From Orbicella franksi (Eukaryota): a stretch of 64,000 bases of DNA. Below are positions 902-29,205 of the stretch, one piece after another (position 1 is the stretch's first letter; every line of letters starts with the position of its first letter). The translations under genes and the position numbers were made by a program. The notes beneath the pieces are model-generated. The model saw only the letters and a program-made list of their open reading frames with translations. It ran no database searches and was not told where the DNA came from. The stretch covers positions 10,044,001-10,108,000 of the forward strand of contig OZ116698.1 in NCBI GenBank assembly GCA_964199315.1. The letters run 5' to 3'.

Positions 902-3900
902 CGACAGATATCCAGCTGTGTCATCCGTAGCTACACTTGAGATGTCATCCTCTTCGTCCATCAGCACTTTAGGTTGATACGAAGGAAAGAACGTGGAATT
1001 ACGAAAACCAAGAGTTTGGTAGTAATGGGACGACCTTTTGCTCTGAAAGATTTCAAAACATTGCTTAAAAAATATAACTTTTCGCACTGGATAAGAAAAT
1101 CTTTCAAGCACTCAAAACGGCACTTCTCTATCGATGAAAATGTTAAACCAGCAAACGCCTAAGCCAGAGCCTCATATATTGTCTATATTGCCAGATTTTC
1201 TGGCCACAAAATTAAAACTATCTACGCTAACCGCTTGTGGTTCATTGAGTAATCACCAGGGCTGTGCTCTAGAAGCGCCTGGTGCCACAGGCGGCAAACT
1301 TTTGCCTTTGGGCGACTGGAAAAACTCACTTTTTTTCATATAAGCTTCAATGCTGGGCACCCAGGATTTGGGCTCCTCGTAATTTTCTTAGACCACAGCC
1401 TTGGTAATCACAGAAAACAATTCTTCCGTCTTCTCCAACCCTCTGGTCCAGCTCATCTTCAGTGTATCCCACAACCTCCCTATCAAAACCCATTTTTCAC
1501 ACTCACCCTGTTTCCTGGTCGAGGTAGATTAGGCATACGTCCCGGAACAGGTAATCCTGCTCTCGCTAATTTGATGAAGTATTTCTGGACACGACTGGCA
1601 ACCTTGAGGAACAAGAAGCATTCTTAAACAAACGTGAACGAGGTTATACAAATACACGAGAGTCAAATAGCCACCGATATAGAAAACAGTGTGTCAATCT
1701 AAATTGTTGGAGATTAAGGTAGTAATGTATTATTTTATATATTATATAAGAACCTTAAGCAAACCACGACGACGAAGGCAAGGAGAAAGTCACCAAACAA
1801 AAGTTTTAATGAGCAAAACAATGGCTGTGCACGTGCGTTACAAGTCTTTGTACATTTCTTTGCCGTCCTCTGCAAACCAACAACGTGAAAAGACCAAGTT
1901 CTGCGCAGTTTGAGGAATGCAAACAACGACGAGTAATCTTTGGTTTCCGTGTGGAATTGAACGCTGTCATTGCATATTTAGCCTGAGCACGATTTTAGAG
2001 CCATTGGCGTACTGAAAAGATCTAGACAATTGCGAATTTTGCTGGTGAAATATAAACTCATTTTTGACTAGGCATTGTCCTCGGCGTCGTTGTTGCTTAA
2101 GCTCCCTGTCAAGGTTTGTTGTTCGCCCTTGTCCTCCTTCCTTCTCATTCGCTGAGATCTATTGGGAGCGTGCGATCTATCGGTAGCGTTGCATTTATAG
2201 CGGTAGCGTGGCTGAGTGGTTATAGGAGGCAGCGTGGCAGAGTGGTTAGGACGCCGGATTTGAAGTCCAGAGGTCGCAGGTTCAATCCCCGTTCTGACCA
2301 CCAACTGGAGTTTCACAGCACACCCGACTACTATTGTTAAACGCTACTGCCAGTTAGGGTTTTTAACCTCGTTATGTTTAATTTGAATAATTTGACACTT
2401 AATTGCTTGACCCCACTGGCATTTGGCTTTAAACACTGATCAAGAGTAAATAAGCACTAAGGTAATTAAGCACTAGTTAACTAATCTACTTATTTTATTG
2501 TACATCAAAGAAGACAAAGAAGGAACCTGTTTGAAAGTTCTGTTTCCCAGAGCAGCTGCGATTTTCTCCCACCTCTTGGCTTCCACTTCTTCCTGAGGGT
2601 AAATCTGCAACAGCTTTTCTAATTTAGCCTGAAAATTAAAAATATTGCCTTGTCAGCTATCCTCAAATCTGGTTAAACTTTAAAGTCACTGTATTCTGTA
2701 GTGCCAAGCTTAAAATCAAAAAGGTCAAAAGGTTCAGCCTAGGCAATCCATTATTCTGGTCAGTGGACATACTGTACATGTACAGGTAGTGTAGTGTGTG
2801 TAGTGTTCTTGAGAAATACTGAACCTATCTCCCTCCGAAAATGTGAATGGATAACAGCAACTTCTTGGGGGAGCAACCTGATATGATGTTTGGGGTTACC
2901 GGCGATGAATCAGCACCCCATCCAGGGGGGAGTAGTGATACCTGAGACACTTACATGTAATGGCATAGCAAATAAAGCGATTCACAAAATACACTTTTCC
3001 CATGTATTAAATTATCAAAATCTATCCCTTTCCTAAAACTAGTCTGCAAAACCTGTCAGACCTGTTCTTCAGCTGTCCATGGTTGATTGAATGTTACTGG
3101 TTTCATCTCATCACAGTGACGACCTCGCACCAGTTTTCCGTTTGTAAACTCGCTATTTCTTGGAGTGAAAACACTCGTCAGACTGAGGAGCAAATAACAA
3201 CATTATGCTGGATAAGAAGTGAGTTTCTGGACAGTTTTATTTTGGACAAAACGTCCCATGCTAAGTTGTAGGTTAAAAATGGCAAATGGCTAAGCAACAC
3301 ACCTGTCGAACCTTGCAAAAACAGTTTGAACATTTTGTACTTAATTTCTTATTTCATTTGTTTCATATTGGGATTGGGCCAATAAATTCATAATCATTAC
3401 CTAGCATCATAGGTCTGCACCGCGTGCAAAGTGGTCAGTAGATAATATATACATGTACTCCCTTTCACTCTCAGCCACAAATTCCCAACAACAGTTATAA
3501 CAGTTCACTTATAACTACAGGTTAATTATTAAAACCATACAACATACAGCAAGACATGAACATGATACCAACCTTTCCCTCTCCAGTGGCTTGCCTTGTT
3601 TGCTGGCTACAAACTCTCCCCCAAAGACACTATACACGTTGCTCTCTGAAGAAGCAGCAGATGCAAATTCACCGGTGTCAGAAGTTTGTATTGATGGCTC
3701 ATTTGCTAAAGAAAAAATTACAAATCAGATCAGACAGTCTAATTCAATATTCTCATAAAGTTAAAAAAGAGACTTAGGATATTGACATTGTTAATGCCAG
3801 AGATGCATTCACATCAATCAGACATTATTTGCATACAAACAAATATACAAATATCAGAATTTTTTGAAAAGCGAAAAATTTATGACAGGTAAGATTTAAA

Positions 3901-6900
3901 GATTTACATGTAAAGCTGGCCCAACCCCCCCACTTGCGGACAAAGAACTGGATAATAATAAGATTTAAAGGTTTGTCATGTAGTATTAACGGGTAGTACG
4001 TCCATAGACATTCGTACAGGATGTTGAAGGAAAAGTTTGTGTTCAAGCACAGTGGCCCATCAGTCCTTATCTCTGGTCTCAGTACCTGCAGTATGAAGCA
4101 GCTTATTGGTAGGAATATTTCTACTCCCCCCTGGATGGGATGCTGGTTCATCACAGGGTTACTCCCACGCATTAAATTTGCCGTTACCCATTTGTACATA
4201 GTGGAGAGAGGCACTGTGAAAGTAAAGTGTCTTGCCCAAGAATACCACACAATGTCCCCCAGCCAGGGCTCAAAACCAGACCACTCAATCCAGAGTCCAG
4301 CGTACTAACCATTAAGTTACCACACCTCCTTTCTTTGAACATCTGCAAGTTCATTATGTTACATGTACATGTATTATACAGTTATCTATCCTTCTCCACA
4401 CATTACAGCACCCTGATACTAGGATAAAGTGTTGCCATCATAACAATATTTTTTAATACCTTTTCCCAGGTTGTTAGAGGCAGCTCTAGTGAGGTGGGGA
4501 TTGCTCAATCTCTCTCTATCTATTGTACTCAGAGATACTGTATACTCTTCCCAAGGAATAGACGGAAGCTTAACTACCTTTTGACGAGATGGAAGATCTA
4601 TATGTTCCTAGATGTAAAACAAAATGACAAGGCATCAGATTCCATGTAGCAAACCTTAAGCAGCCATATTTCTCAAAATTCAACAACTCGTGGTCAGCCC
4701 ATTATAAAGATGTAACTGAGCAATTGTCATCACACAATGTGATATAAAATCAAGTTAAACATTTAAAACTGTGTTTACAACTTTCCCACTAAAGAATCTA
4801 TAACCAAAACATAATTGTCAGTGCAAACTGCACATGTATCCTCAGGTTCCCAAATGTACCATTGATTTACCGGAACAGTAAACATAGGTCAAAACCATTT
4901 TTTTTAATCAGAAAACTTGCAACATCACATTCTACCCTGTTTTGTAGCTTCTCCACAAAACTAATAGGATCCTGAAGAGCTTTAGCTTGCTGTTGATAGA
5001 GAACGTCAAGGTCCTTTGAAATAAACCAAACACAAAAAGTTACGAATAAGCATGAGTATTGGTGTTACTAAAATATAGCCTGAGAAAGCCACTTTTACAC
5101 ATGCCTAGAAATAAGTTTTTATTAGTGATCTCAAAGGTTCTCATGTGAGGCACAGGGATGAGCTGTGTAAGACACGGCACTTTTATCACAGTGACTGCAA
5201 AATTCATCACAAATTTTTATTCAGAGGAACTGTGATAATCAGCCAGTTTAATTCATTACCAGGCAAAGCAACAATGTTAGCACTATACGTCATCCCAAAC
5301 TGAGGCTTGCCAAGGCACCTCTAGGATGTGTCATTATACTAGTATGGGTAATCAAATGGTGACAAGTAGAGGAAGGAAATAATTTTGTGCATGTTTTGTC
5401 AAAATTCTTACCAATAATTTCCTGAGCCTTTAGGCAAGGTAAGTTATTTAAATTTTGACGACTTGCAGTGAAATCATTTTTTTAATTTCACAAGTATACT
5501 ATTTGATAACCTTTTAATATCATGGGTTGCAAATTACTTACAATCATGGTTTTGACTTGTTTACCATTTTGAATTTTGCACCAAATATTGCCATGGCAAT
5601 TTTGTAATTTCACATGTGAAATTTTATAAATAATTATTAACGCTGAAATTGTACACCAAAATGAAGGAGTAAAGAGTCACCACGATATTATTACAATAAC
5701 ATTGTATCGCTCGCCACTGAAATTTTGTTTTTAAGTGGGGAATTTTTTAACAACCAAAACTTGATGTTTGTTTCCCTTTGTCTCACACGTTACTTTTTCA
5801 TGATCCAAAACAAAGGAAATCACATTGACAAGAAACATTTCAACCAGCAACCTACATCTGTACTAACCAGCTGCTGTGATGGGACCAAGAATTTTATTTA
5901 CAACTCAAGAACAATTACATTTTGTGCTACGTATTACTACATATAAAAAATTACACTATCTGATCACCTTTACAGCCTGACTCCTCTGTGATTCCAAAAC
6001 CAACAGGGTTTGCAGTAGCAAATGATAGCTAGAGCAATAACAAAACAGTAGTCTTCTAAGCAATGTCTCCTTTGAAACAAAAATCCTTGATACATCAATG
6101 GAGGCTGCCCTTTTTTGTAACTTTCATTACAGTTTATAATACCATGATACAAACTACTATTGCACTTACACTTAAGAATCAGAAAATATCTTGAATTCAC
6201 TGTCTTTTGGAAAGTTATATCTATCATGGAACTGTGAGTGGGTGTTTAGTAAAAATGAAAGATTTTTCTAAGACTTAAGCCAAAATAGTCCATGCTGACA
6301 CACTGTACTTAGTGTTACAATGAAGATGCTTTAGATGTATATGTCTGTAGTACTACTATAAGTCAAGAGTATGTAACTTTACAGCATCAGTGTAAGATCT
6401 CTTTCTCTGCCTTTCTCAGACTAGCAGGGTTATTAGTTGCTAAAGAAACTGTTGTACTGTATTGGCAGGCAAAAAAAACACTTAACTAATATTATCAATT
6501 ACTCCCATGAGCTGATAAAGGTAAATTAACTACTGTCGCAAAGTTGAATATTTCGCAGAATAGATTTACCTTTATCAATGCATGCATGGTTGACAATTAA
6601 CTGTTTAGTCAGAGTAACACCCATCTCTACAACATCACTTACTGCTTATTATCTTTCAGTGCCAAGTGATCAGATTCAAAGTAGAACCGATCGTAATGAT
6701 CATCCTCAGCTTCATCATGGACGAGTACCTGATCATACCACATGTTGACACCTTTGGCAGAAGATTCCTTTTCCAGCCCACTTACTTCCTTGTCTGCCCT
6801 TTCCTCAAATGTTTCTGTCCTTGCACTAGAGATCTTGATGCTAATTTGCTGAGAGCCTTGATCATCCAAAGCACTGTTTGATCCCACATCTACATCAGCT

Positions 6901-18600: not shown

Positions 18601-20220
18601 GGGTTCGACCGGACCCCCCCCCCCCCCCCCCGATTATATGAAGAAGGAAGATTGTGATAAGCATCCATGTGTTAAGTTCAATGCTGTTTCTCGCTAGTAT
18701 CGTATACGCAGTTTTTGTGCATTTGATCGGGGTATGGCTTTTCCTAGCACTGACCAGGAATGGGGTTCGTATGTACCTTGCACGTAAACTGCAAGATTTA
18801 CTACTTGCCACTCTTTTCCTATCCACTATCTTGTTTAATAAGACCCACGTAACTGATAAATACCCCCGCCCCCACCAACAAACTTGCAGCATGCACAAAA
18901 CAATGGTGACTGTATTTCACACTTTTTCAGGTCAAGAAAAAAGCCATACTTCCTGCAGAACACAACCCCTTATCTGTTAAACAAGCGACTCTAACCAGTG
19001 ACGGAGCTATTGTACGAAAGAGTCTCACTCATTTTAAGACCTCGCGGCACAAAACACTTCAACGCCGTCACATCTTCACTCCGCCTCAATCTCTCTCTCT
19101 AACCAACGAAACTAGGCGCACATAAACTAGGCGAGAGTTCCAAGGCAACTTCAGACAGGACAACTAATATCATTTTAAAGTTCTTCTTAAAGACAGTTGT
19201 CGTTTCACTTGTCGCTACAACCACAACTCTAAATATAACTAAGCCCTTGGCTTATCCTAATATAAATCTATTTACACTCTCTATTATCATAGGAATTATT
19301 TATAACCTTTTTCTTGCCGTTATTACCTGGGCGTTTAATCTTCATGTTAACATCGAAGTACTCTAAGAAAATGATCAATAACTGATCAAAACGGCTGAAA
19401 AAAGCTGGGAAAATCACCATTATACCACTATGCACGAACAATACTTAGTGAACTTTCAACTTTCTTAGTTTTTGCTTGTACCAAAGAAACAAGAAAACCA
19501 CTGCTGACGTCTCAAATGGCTTTTCGCGGGAAAGAAAGCGCGTTCCTCGCCCGCAAGCACATCTGAAATACGAGACAGACAGCCGGAAATTCGCCTGCGT
19601 TCGCAGCCTATTTGTTTGCCAGATTTATCGGACATACATGCACTTGTAACAAGCATTCGTCAAGATAAAAATCGGCTTGGATTGAAAGTAGCCTCTAGAG
19701 GAATGTATAGAAATATGAAATCTCAAAGAGGCGCTTTCAAGCACTGATTAACCCTTCGCACTACATTTTAACTCTTTTCCCAGGTATCTCGACTGTGAGT
19801 TTTTTTCTGAAACCGACGTTAGTGGAAATTATTTGACATCAATTAAATATAAAAACGCTGTGTTTTGCGCGTGATAAAGAAAACAAACTAGTAAGTCAAT
19901 AATATTTTTTGCGCTGCCACAGAACAGGGCCGATTTACTACCTCGTAAACCGTTTATTGTATGGCCGTCTGCCAAACCGTAGCGTTCAGTTATGAAAAAA
20001 GAACCTGTAAAGTAGTAAACGTAAAGGCTTCCTAATGGCATAGGTTGAAGAAATGTTTTCAAACCAAAGGTAACATGAACAAAACATTAACATCTTCGAT
20101 AACATATGGACAAAATAAATCTATCTTTCTTAACTCAACATTTGTAAAAATTAAAATAACTGGAGGCTATCGGAAGTTGACAATGTCGTTGCCGTCACCG
20201 CTAATGGGTTGGTCAAGGTT

Positions 20221-23200
20221 CTACGTATTGGCGGGTGAACACTCTGGAGAAGGCGTATCCAGAGACCTTGCCGTGAAAACCACTATCTTGCTGCTTTCCA
20301 ACAACGCACCCCTGTCACAAAAGCTGTTTTCTCGAAGGTTGGAGTAGACAGATTTTTTGGGACGCGGGTGACCTTTGTAATATGAATCATCTGTCTGTGA
20401 GGGCGTATTCCTTGTCATATTCACCTCGGTGTTGGTTCCCTGATGTTTTACTGGCGTTAAGTACCTGGCCATTTTCCTAGTCGAAGTCTTAATGACGTGC
20501 TCGAACGCTTGACCGTTGAAGCTCTGGAACGCTTCCAGTCGAGCTTTCTGCAGGCGTGTCAGGGGCTTGGACTCTACAGGCGTTATACTGGATCGGGCGG
20601 AAGCCTCGGGAGGACTCTGTTCTGGAATAGGGGCCATTCCACTCAAGCTGCGCACGTGCTTTTCTCGTGCGTACACGTGATCTTCACATGTTTCGACAGG
20701 AGGGGTTTCATTGGCTGCATTCTGCATTGAAGCATCTGCGATTTCATTTACTTCGTTTGAATCGCAGGCTTCTGTTTGCATTTCACTGTCTCTGGACCCA
20801 CCAATTTGAGTAGATTCATCAACTACCTGGAGACCTGTTTGGGAAGAAAATTCTGCAGTGTGTTCATTCAGGGCTATCTCGACATCAATACCACTTTCTT
20901 GTTGGCAAGTACTTTGTCTATCACATGTTACCATGCCAACTGGCTTCAGCGAATCATCAAGGATTTCCGGTTTCTCAACTGATTGACAGGTGTCGTCAAC
21001 TGTCACTGCCACGCCCTCAGATGCGGGTGGACTATCCTTGGACTTCCAAACATTTTCCAGACTCTGTCCTCCGAAACTCTTCAGAGCCTCTAACTGCGAA
21101 GCTTGAACCTTTGTTAGTCGACTTCCTTTGGTAGAGCTTTTTCGCCGCATTATGGCTGAACTTCTTCTTCTTGAGGCTGACCTTCTGTTTTGTTTGCCCT
21201 TACTGGTGGATTTTCTCTTTTCTTTCACACTTTTTTCAATGGATCTCCTTCCGAAACTTTTCTTTGTGTCCTTTTTGATAGTCTCAACGTTCTTGATTCC
21301 TGAAAGGTTGGCTTCAACTCCAAGTCTTCCTCGTCTCTTGCCATTTTGTTGTTGCTCTTGTACCCTTCCTTCTATAAGCGTGCTAAGAGGAGCATTTCCA
21401 AAAGCCTGCTGCGCTTCAAGTTTACATCTCTCTAGTCTAGTAAGTCTCTTTTTTGCATTTTGTGTTTCAGGTTGTGTTTCTGATTTCTTCTCTATGACAC
21501 TAGCTTTTCGCTTCTGGCCAAGGGAAATATTCTTAAATGCTTCATTAGCTTCCTGTCTGGCTTTTTCCATTCTACGGAGAAAAATAGAAGGATTATTGAT
21601 TGGCTATTATAATCCCAATCAAATGCAATTAACAAATTTGCAGACTCTGCATTTCACAAGTCACATTTTATTTTCACCTTGAAGTTCATAAGATCTGGGA
21701 GTATATTGGCTTAAAACTGTCATCAGTGCATTGTGGGTAAAGGGTTAAGTGGCCAATCAGGATAGTACTTAGTTCCTACATTCACTTCACTGGTACCCAT
21801 TTTTAGAAAATAGCCCAAAGCAAACACGTGCACTGATTGGTTCAAAAGCATGTTTCAGATTCTATAACTTGATAGAAACACGGAACTAGCACTAGCTGTT
21901 GACATAATGATGGCCCAAGAAAAGAGAATTTACATTTTGACAATCAAAGTAAGCAAGTTGTTTCCTTTTTTTCTGTTGTAGTATTTTATAAAAGAAATAG
22001 AAAACATGTTTTCTGTGTTTCTGTTGAGTTATAGAAACACTTGTGAAAGTTTGGGAGAACCCAAAAAAGTGCATGGGAACATGAGCCAAAGCTGTGGAAA
22101 CAATCAAATGTCAGCTCGTGTTCCCACAATATTTCCTATTCTCCCAAACTTCCACTTGCATTTCTATACTTGTTGATAGAAACATGGTACATTCTTTCTA
22201 TTTCTGAAACACAGTGAGACTCAAAAGCATTCTTGTTCCCAGAGCCAGGTGTCCTTCATAGCCAGCAGGGCCAAGGTGGCTGTGAAGACACATGATTTGA
22301 TTGAGTAGCCTCTTGAAGTAAGATTTTCATTAACTCAACACCATTGACTTGCTGCAAATATCTGGCTGATCTCAAACTAAGTCATATGATCATAAAACCA
22401 ACAAACCTTCAGGAGTTTAAAACTGGCTTACAGGGAGAATTTTCAGTGAAGTCCTCTAAAACGAAACTTATGTAAAATTCTCCTCCCAACAAGGATGTTA
22501 TTACAATTTTAAATTCCCTTCGATAAAGTCTGTTAAAATCTGTTGGTGCTGCAATCAAATGAGTCGAGATGGAGATCACTTTTTTGGGAAGGAAACCAGT
22601 ATTGAATTTAGCAAAAATCTTGGTCCAAAAATTTGGCGAATTAAATCATGTGCCTACAGAACCAGCGTTTCCCCATGTACAGCCTCAGGCCCCATGAGCT
22701 AAGATGGATTGGTGGCTTTGGGGACAAGGATCGACAAAAGGACAACTGTGACCCCATGCGGACAAAACTAGCAATCAGTCACTTGAGTCTGGCACACTGT
22801 CTAACCGTTGTTACTGATCCAAGGTGCACAAATATCAATAATAGGGATTGCCCTTTGGGCAAATTCTAACTATAATGCACTAGGCTGAAAGTCATTCTCC
22901 CCTGCCCCCCAAAATTTCACCTTCTACCAGACTTCTGTAGTCTAAATTTCTGCAAAAATTTTCCAAAGAAAGTTTACATGCCCATTGAAGGACAGAATCC
23001 ACTAACCCAACTGTAAAATCCACTAGCCCAAGCTATCAGACACAGTTTTCCTTGCAACCAGGGCTTGAAAAAAGTGCTGTCTGGTCACCCAGGGCAAGTA
23101 GATTTTCCTTTCCAGCAAGTAACGTTTCATTCTCACTTGCCTGCTTGGCAAGGGCCCAGGCAAGTCATCTGCCAACTAAATAAAACAATGTAAACTAAGA

Positions 23201-24667
23201 CTTGCCCAGGGCAAGCTGGAATATAAGTTTCTTACAAGCCTTGCACCCTATGATCAAAGCTCTCTTACCGAGTTGGTCTCCTGATTGACTCTTTTCTTGA
23301 GGATGCACTTTTAGCTGCAGTCACTTTCAGTTTTGACTTAAAACAGTCTCTCTTCACAACCAATGAATTAAATGGGCAGTTTCCAAAGGCAGAAAGTGCC
23401 TCACGTCTTGCTTGCTCCACCTGTTTTCCATTGAAAGAGAAAAAAAAAGTCTATTACGATATTGTTATTATTATATTGTCACAGATGCATTCCTGTGTGG
23501 GGCTGTATGGTTTTGATGTGAGACAGTTCAGAAAAGGCCATCCAGCCTCACACAAGTCTGCAATAAATGAATAATTCATTTGGTGAGTACAATCCACAAC
23601 ATTGTTTACCAATATTTTTTCTACAACTTCCCAACAAAGTCAAGCTTATTATGGATGGTAATTATGATAGAGTACTTTCTGACAGAGTTTAAATTGGCAG
23701 GGCAAAAACATTTATGGCTGTTCAGTCTTGGTCATTTTGCAGGGACGTCCTTTAGCTTGGTCTGTATGCCATGACCTTACTGCCAGCCAAAATTATATTT
23801 TCTAGTCTGGCCCCTCCACACAGTTGTGATTTAAGGCATGATATTGCATCTTCAAATGAACGAAGATCAGCAAACATGCAGATATATGTTTCTTTATGAG
23901 TATTTTATTGATAGACTGGTAGTATTTTCAGTCACTAAATAATACCTTTGTGAGCCTTTTCTCTGATGATGTGTTAATGGGAGGTACATTTTCCTGTAGC
24001 ACTGGATTTTTCCCTGCAATACAGTATAACATTAAAATGTTTTGTTTCTGGTGATGTAAATTGAAGGACTAGAGGCAAAGGGTGTACCGTGTTAACAGCT
24101 TTTCAACAAGCCTTATTGAGCCAACATTTTGGTTTGCTGTTGTTGAGCAAAATGCTTTAACTGTTTGATACAGCAATGTTGGAAGATGGAAGATATTCGT
24201 AAAATGTGTTGCAAAGCTAAGAATCGTTGTACTGGCAGTATAAAGTCTTAATCAGACATTTTTCGGCAATTTTAACATATTTAACTTAACGTCTTACGTT
24301 TAAGCTTATTTACACTAATTGTACTGTAATGAACTAAGCTTACATGTACTGTAATGCCAAATGATGGTTATGCAGGATTTAGCTCCGTTTCAGACGAACT
24401 CAAAAAGCCTTATCATTCCCATCGATTTTAAGCATTTTTGTAACCAGTCCGTTTTATCGGTGTTCTGAAAATCCAATTAATAGTAAGATTGCGTTCCTAA
24501 AACAAGATCAGAAAATGTTTTGTTTTGCTCGAAAAACCACACAAACAATCCGGGGAGCGCAAGCCGAGCTGAGGTAGGTTTTCGTCCGCGATTGCTACTT
24601 TTGCGCTGTACTAATCACATACACACGACTCACCTCCATCCAGACTGACAATTACATCAGATGCCAT
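20221..24667 (-). CDS. uncharacterised 534-aa low-complexity protein with five dispersed LT[RK]xxxARxEAxxxFG repeats
   Basis: Exons 24634-24667, 23946-24013, 23269-23420 and 20221-21571, all GT-AG with matching phases (1, 0, 2); total 1605 nt, open frame. The repeat motif is only completed across exon junctions, which supports the model. Confidence 0.85.
23059..23243. mobile_element. small hAT-like MITE
   Basis: Termini CAGGGCTTG...CAAGCCTTG and internal inverted GGGCAAG motifs. Confidence 0.5.
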
Positions 24668-24862
24668 GATAGTGCAACACAATAGTTTAGATTTGGGAGA
24701 GCAATAAGACAATTATGTTTAGCGATTTTCGCTCGATCCGTTACTTTGAAATTTTCCCTCCAAAATAAACACGAAATGCACCTGCGCAGAAACAATTACC
24801 GCATTGTATTAGATCGTGGGCTCGTAAATTTCGCTGGAAATACTGCAAGTGTCATTACAAAG

Positions 24863-27800
24863 ATGAAGCCAGCCGAAAACTCACTGAGTTTCTTCACCAA
24901 AAATCACTCAAAACACGATTCTCAATGGAGAATGACAGGGGAAAACGTTTCAGTAGTTTGCGTAGCGTGTTTGGTAGAGCTTTTGGAAAATGCTGATGTT
25001 CTCCACCTTCGAAAACGCAAGGCCCTTCGTGAGGTTGTCTTTCTTCTCTCGAACAGCCAAGTTCTCTTGGAACTTCTTTCCCAAAATGCGAGAATCACCT
25101 CCCACCTCTGCAGTGTAATAATGGATCTGTTGACCTCAGAGAACGAACTTCTGATGAACACGGCAATCGAAGCTCTTGACATCGTAACGGTCAAACTACG
25201 ATCAGAAAGCCTGGTTGCAGAAATTGTGGAAAAGTTGGAGAACCAAATAATCAAATTGAATAACTTGAAGAAATCCTATCCTTTTGTTGTGGCCTTGGGG
25301 AGATTTCTAAAATCAATTCCGGCTTTATCTCAAGTAATCGCTAAAGATTCGTCCAGTTTGATGGAATATTTGCTTTCCAACCTTCTGTTTCCGGAAGATA
25401 ATGTCAAAGCAGCTTTTCTTTTCGTCCTCGTGCAGATTTGCTCGAACGAGGAGGCGTTGAACGGGTTGAGTTTGCAGATCAAAGAGAAGATATGTAAGCA
25501 AACATGCGCCGTTATCAACTGCTCAATCGGCATGGATGTTCAAATAAACGCCCTTAAAGTTTTGAAGCTGTTTGCCAGACAATCAGACGTGCTGAAGTCT
25601 GTTTTGAAGCCCTCAAACACGGGCAACTGCGCAATGGTGGAAAGCTTGAAGAAATTGCTGCTGTCACCAAACGAAGCAATCCAGATCGGAACTATACAAT
25701 GTATCACTCAGATATTAAGAAATGACCCAGCGGAGAATGATTACACTAGAGTCTTCCTGACCTGCGGAATTGGAGAGATGTTACTTGAAGACTTGGAATG
25801 CTCCAGTGACATAATTCTGGGGTCAGTGTTCTGTTGTTTAGATCATATGGTTAGAACTCAAATCTTTTACTCCGAAGGCTACTCCGTGTACGGTATAGAG
25901 TCAGTAATCGTTGGTGTATCGAAAGCCATCAAGCTCAAGAACCACGAAATAATCAGGCAAGCCACTCATGTGTTAGCACTGATTTTATCAAAGCAACCCT
26001 CTAACGTCCAGCTCTTTCCAAATGATGAGCTCTGGAAGAAGTGTGCTGGCGTGCTGTTCGAGTGTCTGCAGTCTGCAGACCACAGGGTGCTGACTCAGGC
26101 AGCGAATGCAGTGGAACATTTTCTGAACATCGACTTCTTTCCCCCATCAATGGAGTTTGAAGCTGTTATTTCTCTTGTGTCAAGCATTACATCACATTTA
26201 CAGAAGTTCACCAAGCCAATGATACATTTTAGAAATATTCCCAAAGGTAAGCTATACGCACCACATGCAACCTTGAAGATTGTCATGCCAACACACTATC
26301 TTTAATTTTAACCATAAAAGTTTCAGAAGAATGGCAGTGGGGTGACAGAACAAATACATTCCCATTGACCAACTTTTCGACCTTTTTGCATTTTTGATTT
26401 ATTTTTAGTTTCCCATATTCCTTTCCCAGCAATCTAATCTTGGCATTTTTCTTCCTTTAATATTATGAACTTAACTGAATTTCTTACATAACTATTAAGT
26501 CTTGTTAGAATTACTACACCCATCCCGTTACGAATGTTAACTGCCAGCGTGTAGCCTGGGTCACTGAGAGTATTTTGCATAGGTGGGAGTTATCTGACTT
26601 ACTTCAGTTTTGCAATATAAACGGCCATACGGGGCATGCATGTAGTTAAATGAGACAGGAGAACTAGTGGGATAGAGCGGAAAGAAGGGTGCTTTAATGT
26701 TCAAAACTACTTTTCACAATTATAAATTCTTTTAACTATTTAGGGGCACTCGAGACATTTCTGTGTACTCTATTAGAGGTACTCAAGAAGAGTTTCCAGT
26801 TTGTTCAAGATTACCAAGATCGCAAACCATCCTATACAGCCCTGCTAATACAGAATGAAGCATCAATTTCAAAAGAGAAAGAAGTGCTAGGCCAGTTTGT
26901 GGAGTCGTTGTGGAAAGTCATTGATCAAACATGCGTTCCAGCCTTAGTGGTGAACTGTGAGGCTATTGAGAACCAAACTGTGTTTAAGAACGTTTTTGAG
27001 ATCCTACATCTCTCCGTGTCTTCGCTGAGTATCTGCAGGAAGGTTTTTGCCCAAAAGCTTGCCTCAGGGTCGTTTGTTCGACTGTCGCTTGAGATCAAAG
27101 AAAAATTCCATAGAAGAGCAGAGAGCAGTGAGCTTGGAGATGCAATAGCAACATTCTTGACAGAACTTTGTCTTACACTCAGTGATGCCTCTGACAGCAT
27201 TCAGCTTGGAAAATTGTTGAAGACAACTGACATTGGTGGTATTTATTCCTCAACAACGTGCTTGAACTTGCTGACCCAAAGTGCAGTAAGGCAAGGTACT
27301 AATGAGATCATCGACGACTCACTCTTCAGCACACAGTGCGCTTGTATTGAGCTGATGTATGTGTCGTTTGCTCACGGTGACGAGATAGTCCCTGTTGAGC
27401 ACCTTATGACAAGTCTACACAAGTATCTTGTCTTGCATCAAGATCTCAGAATCGTGCCTCGCGTCTCACTGAAACATTTATTGTTTCTCTGGACGGGATG
27501 TTACAGAAGGCTAAGGACATTACCACTGCAATCTACCGTCGTCGAAAACATGAAAGCTTCCCAAGAGATTCTAGAGCAAAGTTTGGTGAAGTTCAAAGTA
27601 GATGAGTTTGAATCCATTTACATTCATGACCCTCTCTTCGTTTCCTGGATATTTTCTCGTGAATCTCTGGCACAAGCCTTTGGACGACAGGCTTTGATCA
27701 GCTTTCTAGGAACAGACACAGCACAGGACTCTCCCATTAACGCAGAACTCTACAATCTTCTAGCAACTAACTTACAAAGCTTTCGCACGTTTGTCTCGCT

Positions 27801-29205
27801 CGTTGAATGTAACGAGGAAGCTATCGCCGATCGTGTAGTGACCATCCTGGAAAGATTGATCGGCCAAGATTCAGACGCTTCAACAAAGTTAAGCATGTCC
27901 AATCAAAGGTCACTGGCAACTCATATAACAAGTATTTTTCACAAGCTTTTCCTGAGCCACAAGGCTAATCCTCTTCAGGAGCACTCAATTACTGCCATGC
28001 TGAATGTGATGGTGGCTGTCCAAATGAAGAACCTGGCATTTGACATCAAGCTTTTGTACCATGTCATTAACTTGTTGACATCAACCAAATGTTGTCAAAC
28101 ATTCTCAGTCGTCGCCTTCAATTACCTGAACGTGTCGTTAGCTTGGGACACACACAGAGAAAACCAGAGGGTTGCTGCAGTGCTTCTTTCCAACAAAGGG
28201 TTCTGTAGCTTTGTCCAAGAGATTCTGAATGCCAGCCCAGCCAAAGATGATGGACAGCGGAGGGATTCCCTGGAGGATATCAATTTACTAGCGAGTATCT
28301 TGATTCTCATCTCGTCCCTTGCAAACTCCCAGATGCTGGCTCAGAAAGACGACCAAGATGCATTCAGAATTGACAAGAACTGCATGATGAAACTCGCCAA
28401 TAAACGGCAAAACATTTTGGGACTTTCAAGTCTTGTTTTCTGGGATTCCTTCTTTAGAACAACAGGTGAATCAGAAAACCCTGTCGTGGTGTTGTCAGTT
28501 AGGACCCAGGAGAAGTATCAGCCCCTTGAGAAGCTATCCGATGTGGATCTCCACGTATTGCTTGTTTACCTGCAGAACTCCTTGATCCATGACAGTGAGA
28601 CTGTAAGGCAATGTGCAGTGAAGTGCTTGGACAGCTTCCTAACCTACGTTCCAAACGCCAGCTACTTCGCAACTAATCCATGGAACAAAATCGTTCTGGA
28701 ATCACAGTTATGTGAGCTCAATGTTAACGTTGTAACCCCGAGCTTGGTTCTGTTTTGTTTGCTCATTCTGCAACATGCAGAGGCTGATGAACACCAACTG
28801 TCTAGCGTCCTTCAAAATGCAGTGAAGTCCATTCTTGAGAAAATTCCGAGCATTCCGTGTTCAGAGCGAGAACTGTCGTGGCAGTGTATTAATCTCTTGG
28901 TTCAAGTGTTAAGCTCGAAAGAGTTCATGCCATCCAACCAAAAGGGTGCTGTTGCCACTTGGCTAAGAACGTTTAAGGAGTCACTGAAGACAAATTTCGA
29001 GGAGAGCGCCTCAACCAACGAATCAAAGCAGGATGACCTGATCAAAGATATGACGTTTTTCAAATTAGATGCAGTGATTTTTGCAAAGAGCATGCTTAAA
29101 CCACAAAATACCAAGGGTTCTGAGCTCTTGGAAAAAGCATTGCTACTTCTTGATGATAAGAGCGACGAAGATGCGGAAACTGGAAATCAGTCCATTGTAT
29201 TGTAG
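24863..29205 (+). CDS. MEI1: meiosis inhibitor protein 1 (meiotic double-strand-break formation protein)
   Basis: Two exons, 24863-26246 and 26744-29205 (AAAG|gtaagc...tttag|GG, phase 1), giving 1281 aa. Motifs HSKHDSQW, CVACLVELL...LRKRKAL, LKKLLLSPNEAIQIGTIQCI and YSVYGIESVI match MEI1 orthologs in order, and the length matches. Confidence 0.88.

Follow-up and report, generated by a model that had tools for sequence, protein, structure and literature searches.

A repeat-motif protein gene head-to-head with MEI1 in the coral Orbicella franksi

Description

The 64,000-nucleotide stretch of Orbicella franksi DNA analysed here (GenBank assembly GCA_964199315.1, contig OZ116698.1, positions 10,044,001 to 10,108,000 of the forward strand; hereafter the window, with positions counted from its first letter) holds, on its minus strand, a spliced gene for a protein with five copies of a helix-like motif, and this repeat-protein gene stands head-to-head with MEI1 across a gap of 195 nt. 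A first reading of the window, made from its letters alone (the sequence-only reading), had described the gene and its motif and had suggested a germline or meiotic role. Here, we describe the gene, the family to which its protein belongs and the promoter region that it shares with MEI1, which together point, tentatively, to proliferation rather than to meiosis.

The gene and its transcript

The repeat-protein gene is real, spliced and expressed. Its minus-strand reading frame (1605 nt, 534 aa) runs from 24667 to 20221 in four exons joined by canonical GT..AG introns. The coding part of exon 1 (24634..24667) carries the ATG at 24667 and encodes residues 1-11 plus one base; exon 2 (23946..24013) encodes residues 12-34, which include QENVPP (23979-23996) and, at 23946-23960, the opening five residues of repeat 1; and exon 3 (23269..23420) encodes residues 35-85, where repeat 1 is completed (23370-23420) and repeat 2 begins (23269-23282). 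The coding part of exon 4 (20221..21571) encodes residues 85-534 and the stop codon and holds the end of repeat 2 (21520-21571), repeats 3 (21385-21450), 4 (21058-21123) and 5 (20503-20568), a conserved segment after repeat 5 with an invariant TPxK site (20425-20502) and a conserved C-terminal helix (20245-20328). The 3' untranslated region (19941..20220, likewise on the minus strand) contains AATAAA at 19953-19958, twelve bases before a transcript contig of RNA run X12 ends near 19941.

That contig, from polyA RNA, is 2180 nt long, has a depth of 197 and joins all four exons, and one contig of run X1 likewise spans the four. Raw reads of run X23 cross each of the three splice junctions, including 24634|24013, so that the four-exon model of the sequence-only reading holds at every junction, in contigs and in raw reads. 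First mates of the stranded run X21 fall on the plus strand only, which fits RNA from the minus strand, and exon 1 is confirmed by the M-A-S-D-V start kept in orthologues P0011, P0023, P0025, P0045 and P0048. The gene is single-copy in its 497-Mb genome.

The protein and its five motifs

The motif copies occupy residues 30-51, 81-102, 126-147, 235-256 and 420-441, exactly as first quoted, and follow a consensus of roughly R-L-T-[KR]-x-[EQ]-x-A-x-x-E-A-x-x-[AS]-F-G-[GN], after which come a turn and a short hydrophobic stretch. A pattern fitted to the five copies matches the protein five times, and because none of 20,000 shuffles gave even one match, the copies are not due to chance. The protein is rich in serine (12%), lysine (9%), glutamate (8.6%) and arginine (7.9%), with a pI of 9.6, basic clusters and two stretches resembling bipartite nuclear localisation signals. 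In an alignment of 13 coral sequences, the majority residue accounts for a fraction of 0.76-0.90 in the repeats, in the stretch that follows repeat 5 and in the C-terminal helix, and of 0.49-0.71 in the linkers; three T-P sites do not vary among these corals, one of them the T-P-x-K that comes right after repeat 5.

AlphaFold, run on a 79%-identical orthologue with the 13-sequence coral alignment, gave a predicted local distance difference test (pLDDT) value below 50 for 356 of 531 residues (mean 46) and a predicted template modelling score (pTM) of 0.16, with each repeat as a 12-14-residue helix at pLDDT 70-82 and one further helix near the C-terminus. For the N-terminal 136 residues (the region of motif types A, B and C, defined below) and a more diverse alignment, helix confidence rose to as much as 95 with a pTM of only 0.23. 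Confident helices at pTM 0.16 and 0.23 indicate that the helices do not pack together. The protein is basic and, as the earlier reading had it, predicted to be mostly disordered, and the repeats are predicted to be isolated amphipathic helices, each with an N-terminal cap; a whole unit would span about 35 residues, as a helix, a Gly-Gly or Gly-Asn turn and a second short helix.

Ahead of repeat 1, the window protein has QENVPP at residues 18-23 and no KEN tripeptide, and coral orthologues likewise keep a KEN-like x-E-N-x-P-P there and lack KEN itself. One orthologue, P0023 of Desmophyllum pertusum, differs from other corals by a long tandem run of M-E-P-V-G-like pentapeptides at residues ~255-360, within the acidic, variable linker that separates repeats 4 and 5.

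An old family with ordered motif types

A word-indexed search returned 50 homologues, all coral-like, for which the only names given were 'hypothetical' or 'uncharacterized' protein (Desmophyllum, Montipora). A profile built from the coral alignment and compared with 1.84 billion representative proteins yielded 62 matches at E up to 0.001, and the named ones outside stony corals were an uncharacterised protein of Nematostella vectensis (A7RW75 / XP_001636324, LOC5516173; E 3e-64), which is a true homologue, a transcript of Syssomonas multiformis (1e-7) and a transcript of Pygsuia biforma (5e-6). Many other matches are short exon open reading frames (ORFs) with a strongly conserved unit, R-L-T-R-V-E-R-A-R-L-E-A-L-Q-S-F-G-G, a turn, L-D-D-V-M and S-K-R-K-V-A-R-T-L-E. 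Two later word-indexed searches for named distant relatives gave only known sequences among the best 8000 candidates and are weak negatives.

The motif copies fall into three types, and a fixed order A-B-C aligns across corals, Nematostella, Syssomonas, Pygsuia and further genomes. In type A the helix is followed by a V-V-K-K-x-x-F-x-x-K-L tail, in type B it ends in F-K-x-I-x-L-G before a basic cluster, and in type C the last copy is followed by S-x-R-K-x-A-x-x-L. Corals have five copies; copy number and spacing differ between lineages. In the non-coral loci L002 and L011, ORF ends put introns at points equivalent to those in corals, type A being interrupted after R-L-T-[KRM] and type B after T-R, which supports orthology over convergence. 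The KEN tripeptide occurs in 30 of the 47 motif-bearing matches outside stony corals, downstream of the last motif in 26 of these. The Nematostella protein and the homologues of Desmophyllum pertusum and Montipora capricornis (48% and 42% identical to exon 4, respectively) share the A-B-C order, a last type C followed by K-Y-L-[TK]-P, and a C-terminal L-L-E-T-S-x-x-V-V-x-T-A helix; none of the three has been named, given a domain annotation or functionally described, and they show only that the gene has been predicted elsewhere. Judged by these sequence comparisons, the motif is the mark of an old protein family and not a coral novelty, with members in corals, sea anemones, a unicellular holozoan, a breviate and sponge-like genomes.

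The conserved order bears on the idea that the helices bind one another and form a bundle within or between chains, which we consider distinctly improbable. Their amphipathic character and heptad-like hydrophobic spacing would suit such a bundle, as would the conserved order and spacing of A-B-C, but AlphaFold sets the helices apart (pTM 0.16-0.23) even with the more diverse alignment, and copy number and spacing vary between lineages.

Comparison with known motifs

The sequence-only reading had not recognised the repeat as a named domain, and profile, Pfam, PDB and literature searches leave it so. In Pfam, the exon-4 ORF matched no family at E up to 1, scans of 13 diverse members with E as high as 5 turned up no more than isolated chance matches below threshold, none of them in more than one member, and the precomputed annotation is blank ('-') for all homologues. 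Among PDB sequences, the coral profile had no match at E up to 10, and the best match of a broad profile was Hsp70 at E 0.2, a chance level. A feature search of the ESM Atlas with P0011, the orthologue at 79% identity, returned nothing usable, and a literature search on the Nematostella accessions or the motif strings found no paper. By inspection, a D-box was rejected because it fits repeat 1 only and a PP1 RVxF motif because the F is not conserved; the PIP box, PP2A-B56 LxxIxE, BH3, the ubiquitin-interacting motif and the Sin3-interaction motif were set aside as well, their spacing or key residues being misfitting or unconserved across copies.

Size and layout of the unit raise the question of tandem nucleic-acid- or chromatin-binding modules, that is, SAP- or HeH-like helix-turn-helix units whose basic linkers would add affinity. 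SAP/HeH motifs are similar in size (about 35 residues) and in their order of helix, glycine turn and helix, and the pI of 9.6 and several K/R clusters would suit such a role. The pattern of conserved residues differs, however: the SAP model (PF02037; L..L..ELR..L..RGL...G.K..L) had no match in the exon-4 ORF or in the 13-member scans, no member reached any other Pfam DNA-binding model at E up to 5, no PDB sequence matched, and hydrophobic and acidic residues (E-A-L-x-S-F), rather than basic ones, make up the face that is conserved on the first helix. We regard nucleic-acid binding as conceivable and unlikely.

A further comparison concerns the C-terminal domain of RPA32, of which the protein might be a multivalent binder. 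The first half of the helix resembles the RPA32C-binding pattern of SMARCAL1, XPA, UNG2 and TIPIN (hydrophobic-E/Q-x-x-R/K-x-x-A-L), and by inspection V-E-R-A-R-L-E-A-L of the family can be set beside I-E-R-K-R-Q-R-A-L of XPA. The known motifs go on as a basic helix (A-L-x-x-R, with a turn of the form A-[LA]-x-x-[RK]), whereas the helix of the family ends in [AS]-F-G-[GN], typically S-F-G-G, and the likeness was drawn by eye. Binding to RPA32 is the reading to which we give least credence, and a highly improbable one.

In principle rather than in sequence, the protein recalls the BRC repeats of BRCA2, the GoLoco motifs of LGN/AGS3, WH2 and RPEL, in which helix-forming motifs of about 20-35 residues on a disordered chain each dock one partner surface. 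We propose this principle for the coral motif as well; BRC, GoLoco, WH2 and RPEL differ from it in that they have no sequence relationship to it, and no Pfam model of them matches.

MEI1 and the shared promoter region

MEI1 occupies 24863..29205 on the plus strand as two long ORFs (24746-26305 and 26884-29205). It is identified by 55% identity over 476 residues to an ORF of coral contig L001 that carries Pfam MEI1_N (PF28582); a local Pfam scan of the window MEI1 gave only weak HEAT matches and no MEI1_N, and in other corals the Pfam records of the matching ORFs list both MEI1_N and TPR_PRD1. The two-ORF layout (MEI1_N in the first, MEI1_N and TPR_PRD1 in the second) recurs in all five other coral contigs, which makes the intron-poor structure of MEI1 old within stony corals.

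The start codons, at 24667 and 24863, lie 196 bp apart and face away from each other, with 195 nt between them (24668..24862), so that coordinates and homology both bear out the bidirectional arrangement first described. In five other coral contigs, a MEI1_N ORF likewise lies upstream on the opposite strand, including in species whose orthologue is only 39-53% identical, and for the four of these whose DNA was available, the distance between start codons is 187, 227, 156 and 322 bp. Both genes appear in RNA runs, less than 1 kb separates their start codons and corals keep the arrangement: the two form a divergent gene pair whose head-to-head order is conserved in stony corals. The sequence-only reading had suggested looking for this synteny in other anthozoans: it is present in the five coral contigs, and in the non-coral loci that were examined, L002, L004 and L011, no MEI1 was seen next to the gene.

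Alignment of the gap from five coral genomes (the window, L001, L005, L006 and L007) shows few conserved blocks and a single invariant core, TTCAAA.TAACGGA (24738..24750, minus strand), which consists of TTCAAA, one variable base, T-A and ACGGA; one of the five genomes has three extra bases before ACGGA. The AACGG within it matches the Myb recognition core. TTCAAA (24745-24750, minus strand) reads TTTGAA on the plus strand, fits TTYRAA, the sequence definition of the CHR (cell cycle genes homology region), and is invariant in the five genomes. The MuvB component LIN54 binds the CHR, of which TTTGAA is the commonest form (PMC4974476). The block reads as a putative CHR joined to a Myb-type site, from which we infer the class of factor that may bind it. 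In holding TTTGAA next to an AACGG core, close to the likely transcription starts, the coral block resembles late cell-cycle promoters of the CHR/Myb-MuvB (DREAM) type; it differs in being a single short site known by its sequence, and such elements also serve in the control of germline genes. A GC-rich near-palindrome, TGCGCAGGTGCA (24777..24788, minus strand), is conserved in the five-genome alignment as well and resembles an NRF1 site. In L007 (6700-6830), an insertion of about 110 bp, absent in the other four genomes, lies in the gap just upstream of an intact TTCAAA/ACGGA block.

At its 5' side, the 2180-nt contig of run X12 is unbroken from 24633 to 24941, across exon 1, the whole gap and 79 nt of MEI1 coding sequence, and ends at single-nucleotide polymorphisms at 24942 and 24946. 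Because it crosses the entire gap, the gap is transcribed in at least one direction; since contigs carry no strand, the contig represents either a long 5' leader overlapping MEI1 or merged, overlapping divergent transcripts. A short leader is favoured by the raw reads, whose depth drops at about 24700.

Expression relative to MEI1

MEI1 is needed for meiotic double-strand-break formation, and head-to-head genes are often co-expressed; on this background the sequence-only reading had proposed a germline or meiotic role. Stated in full, the proposal is that the common promoter drives both genes in meiotic cells and that the helices dock MEI1 or other double-strand-break machinery. It can draw on the head-to-head pair in six coral genomes, counting the window, at 156-322 bp and with a conserved intergenic block, on the presence of MEI1 sequence in 9 of the 14 RNA runs that hold the repeat-protein gene, which places both genes in adult colony RNA, and on the part that factors of the MuvB and Myb type also play in controlling germline and meiotic genes. 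The levels tell another way: contig depth in X12 is 197 for the repeat-protein gene and 5-27 for MEI1, and the raw polyA reads of X21 and X23 cover the repeat-protein gene with zero depth on MEI1 positions 24879-25400. These levels argue against tight co-expression with MEI1 and are compatible with a shared germline peak. That no MEI1 was seen beside the gene in L002, L004 and L011 also speaks against the proposal, as does the occurrence of the family in Pygsuia and Syssomonas (as transcripts only, from which gene order is not readable). The germline or meiotic role is thus not supported, and we hold it to be unlikely.

A more specific version would make the family, in early-branching animals, the missing accessory factor of the machinery for meiotic double-strand breaks. 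The MuvB/Myb element would co-activate it with MEI1, the helices would dock onto the solenoid of MEI1 or onto partners of MEI1 and gather these on chromosome axes, and cyclin-dependent kinase phosphorylation together with KEN-type degradation would limit the timing. We think this version very improbable. When residues 1-470 of MEI1 were folded jointly with residues 20-150 (types A-C) of the 98%-identical P0001, the score was 0.00, a result that counts neither for nor against binding.

Proposed role

The explanation that we prefer, while giving it slightly less than an even chance, is that the gene belongs to an old family of disordered, basic, probably nuclear scaffolds with independent docking helices, coupled to proliferation or the cell cycle and not specific to meiosis. 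The helices would serve as independent docking sites on a flexible chain and would hold, in the nucleus, several copies of one partner or several surfaces of one complex. Proline-directed phosphorylation would set the availability of the helices, and in other lineages KEN-dependent degradation may do so as well. In stony corals, a short divergent promoter is common to the gene and MEI1, and its only invariant block looks CHR- and Myb-like. Taken together, the phosphorylation sites, the KEN feature and the CHR-like block point to the cell cycle and proliferation more than to meiosis. Sororin and securin, KEN-box substrates of the anaphase-promoting complex/cyclosome, are likewise disordered and basic with proline-directed kinase sites; they differ in that the window protein has Q-E-N in place of K-E-N and has no other sequence feature in common with them. 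In the wider family, KEN is a putative degron.

Several points weigh against this preference. The docking proposal comes from sequence and structure prediction, and the motifs could bind nucleic acid or chromatin instead of protein. The profile search showed no named bilaterian, fungal or plant member from which a function could be transferred. The window's own protein has QENVPP and no KEN. MuvB-type regulators also control germline genes, so that the promoter block does not separate cell-cycle from meiotic control, and the expression sample consists of a few colony-level runs with shallow sampling.

Relatives of the protein were already public as predicted, uncharacterised proteins, and a disordered protein with tandem helical docking motifs is a familiar kind; new here are the motif family and its range beyond animals, the ordered motif types, the KEN feature and the conserved divergent MEI1 promoter in stony corals. 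So old and constrained a family usually has a defined partner, whose identification would give a conserved nuclear process a further component; the process in question is most likely connected with proliferation. With its single invariant CHR/Myb-like block, the gap of about 200 bp offers a compact, testable divergent promoter in corals and a handle on the control of MEI1 in animals whose meiotic regulation is almost unstudied. Should the repeat-protein gene prove unrelated to meiosis, the pair would show that close head-to-head linkage does not imply common function.

Other features of the locus and its relatives

Outside corals, the neighbours of the gene are an SLC15-like transporter in L002/L003, a reverse transcriptase in L004 and nothing recognisable in L010; the nearest Atlas cluster of the SLC15-type neighbour in L002 is mostly sponge, a weak hint of lineage. 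No MEI1_N lies within 10 kb on the contig of P0050. In L011 (555-3156, plus strand, and 3504-6302, minus strand), a homologue stands tail-to-tail with a HIRA-like gene, a single 932-codon ORF on its far side, and the contig ends 554 bp upstream of the homologue. At its N-terminus, this homologue is extended by at least eight acidic repeats in tandem, each about 29 residues long; types A, B and C come next, and the ORF ends just past a KEN tripeptide.

Within the repeat-protein gene, three exon-4 positions (21246, 21253 and 21311) have another base than the window in all or almost all reads of X21, while X23 matches the window there; these differences are probably strain or population variation within one species label. 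Intron 3 contains an interspersed repeat of about 210 bp (21860..22070) that lies outside the gene product and has at least 1775 candidate copies in the genome, 40 scored copies being 86-90% identical. It accounts for a sharp peak of RNA depth there (~2400 in X1, 1850 in X12), and many of the reads run on into unrelated sequence; it is probably a family of short interspersed nuclear elements (SINE) or miniature inverted-repeat transposable elements (MITE) transcribed inside many genes.

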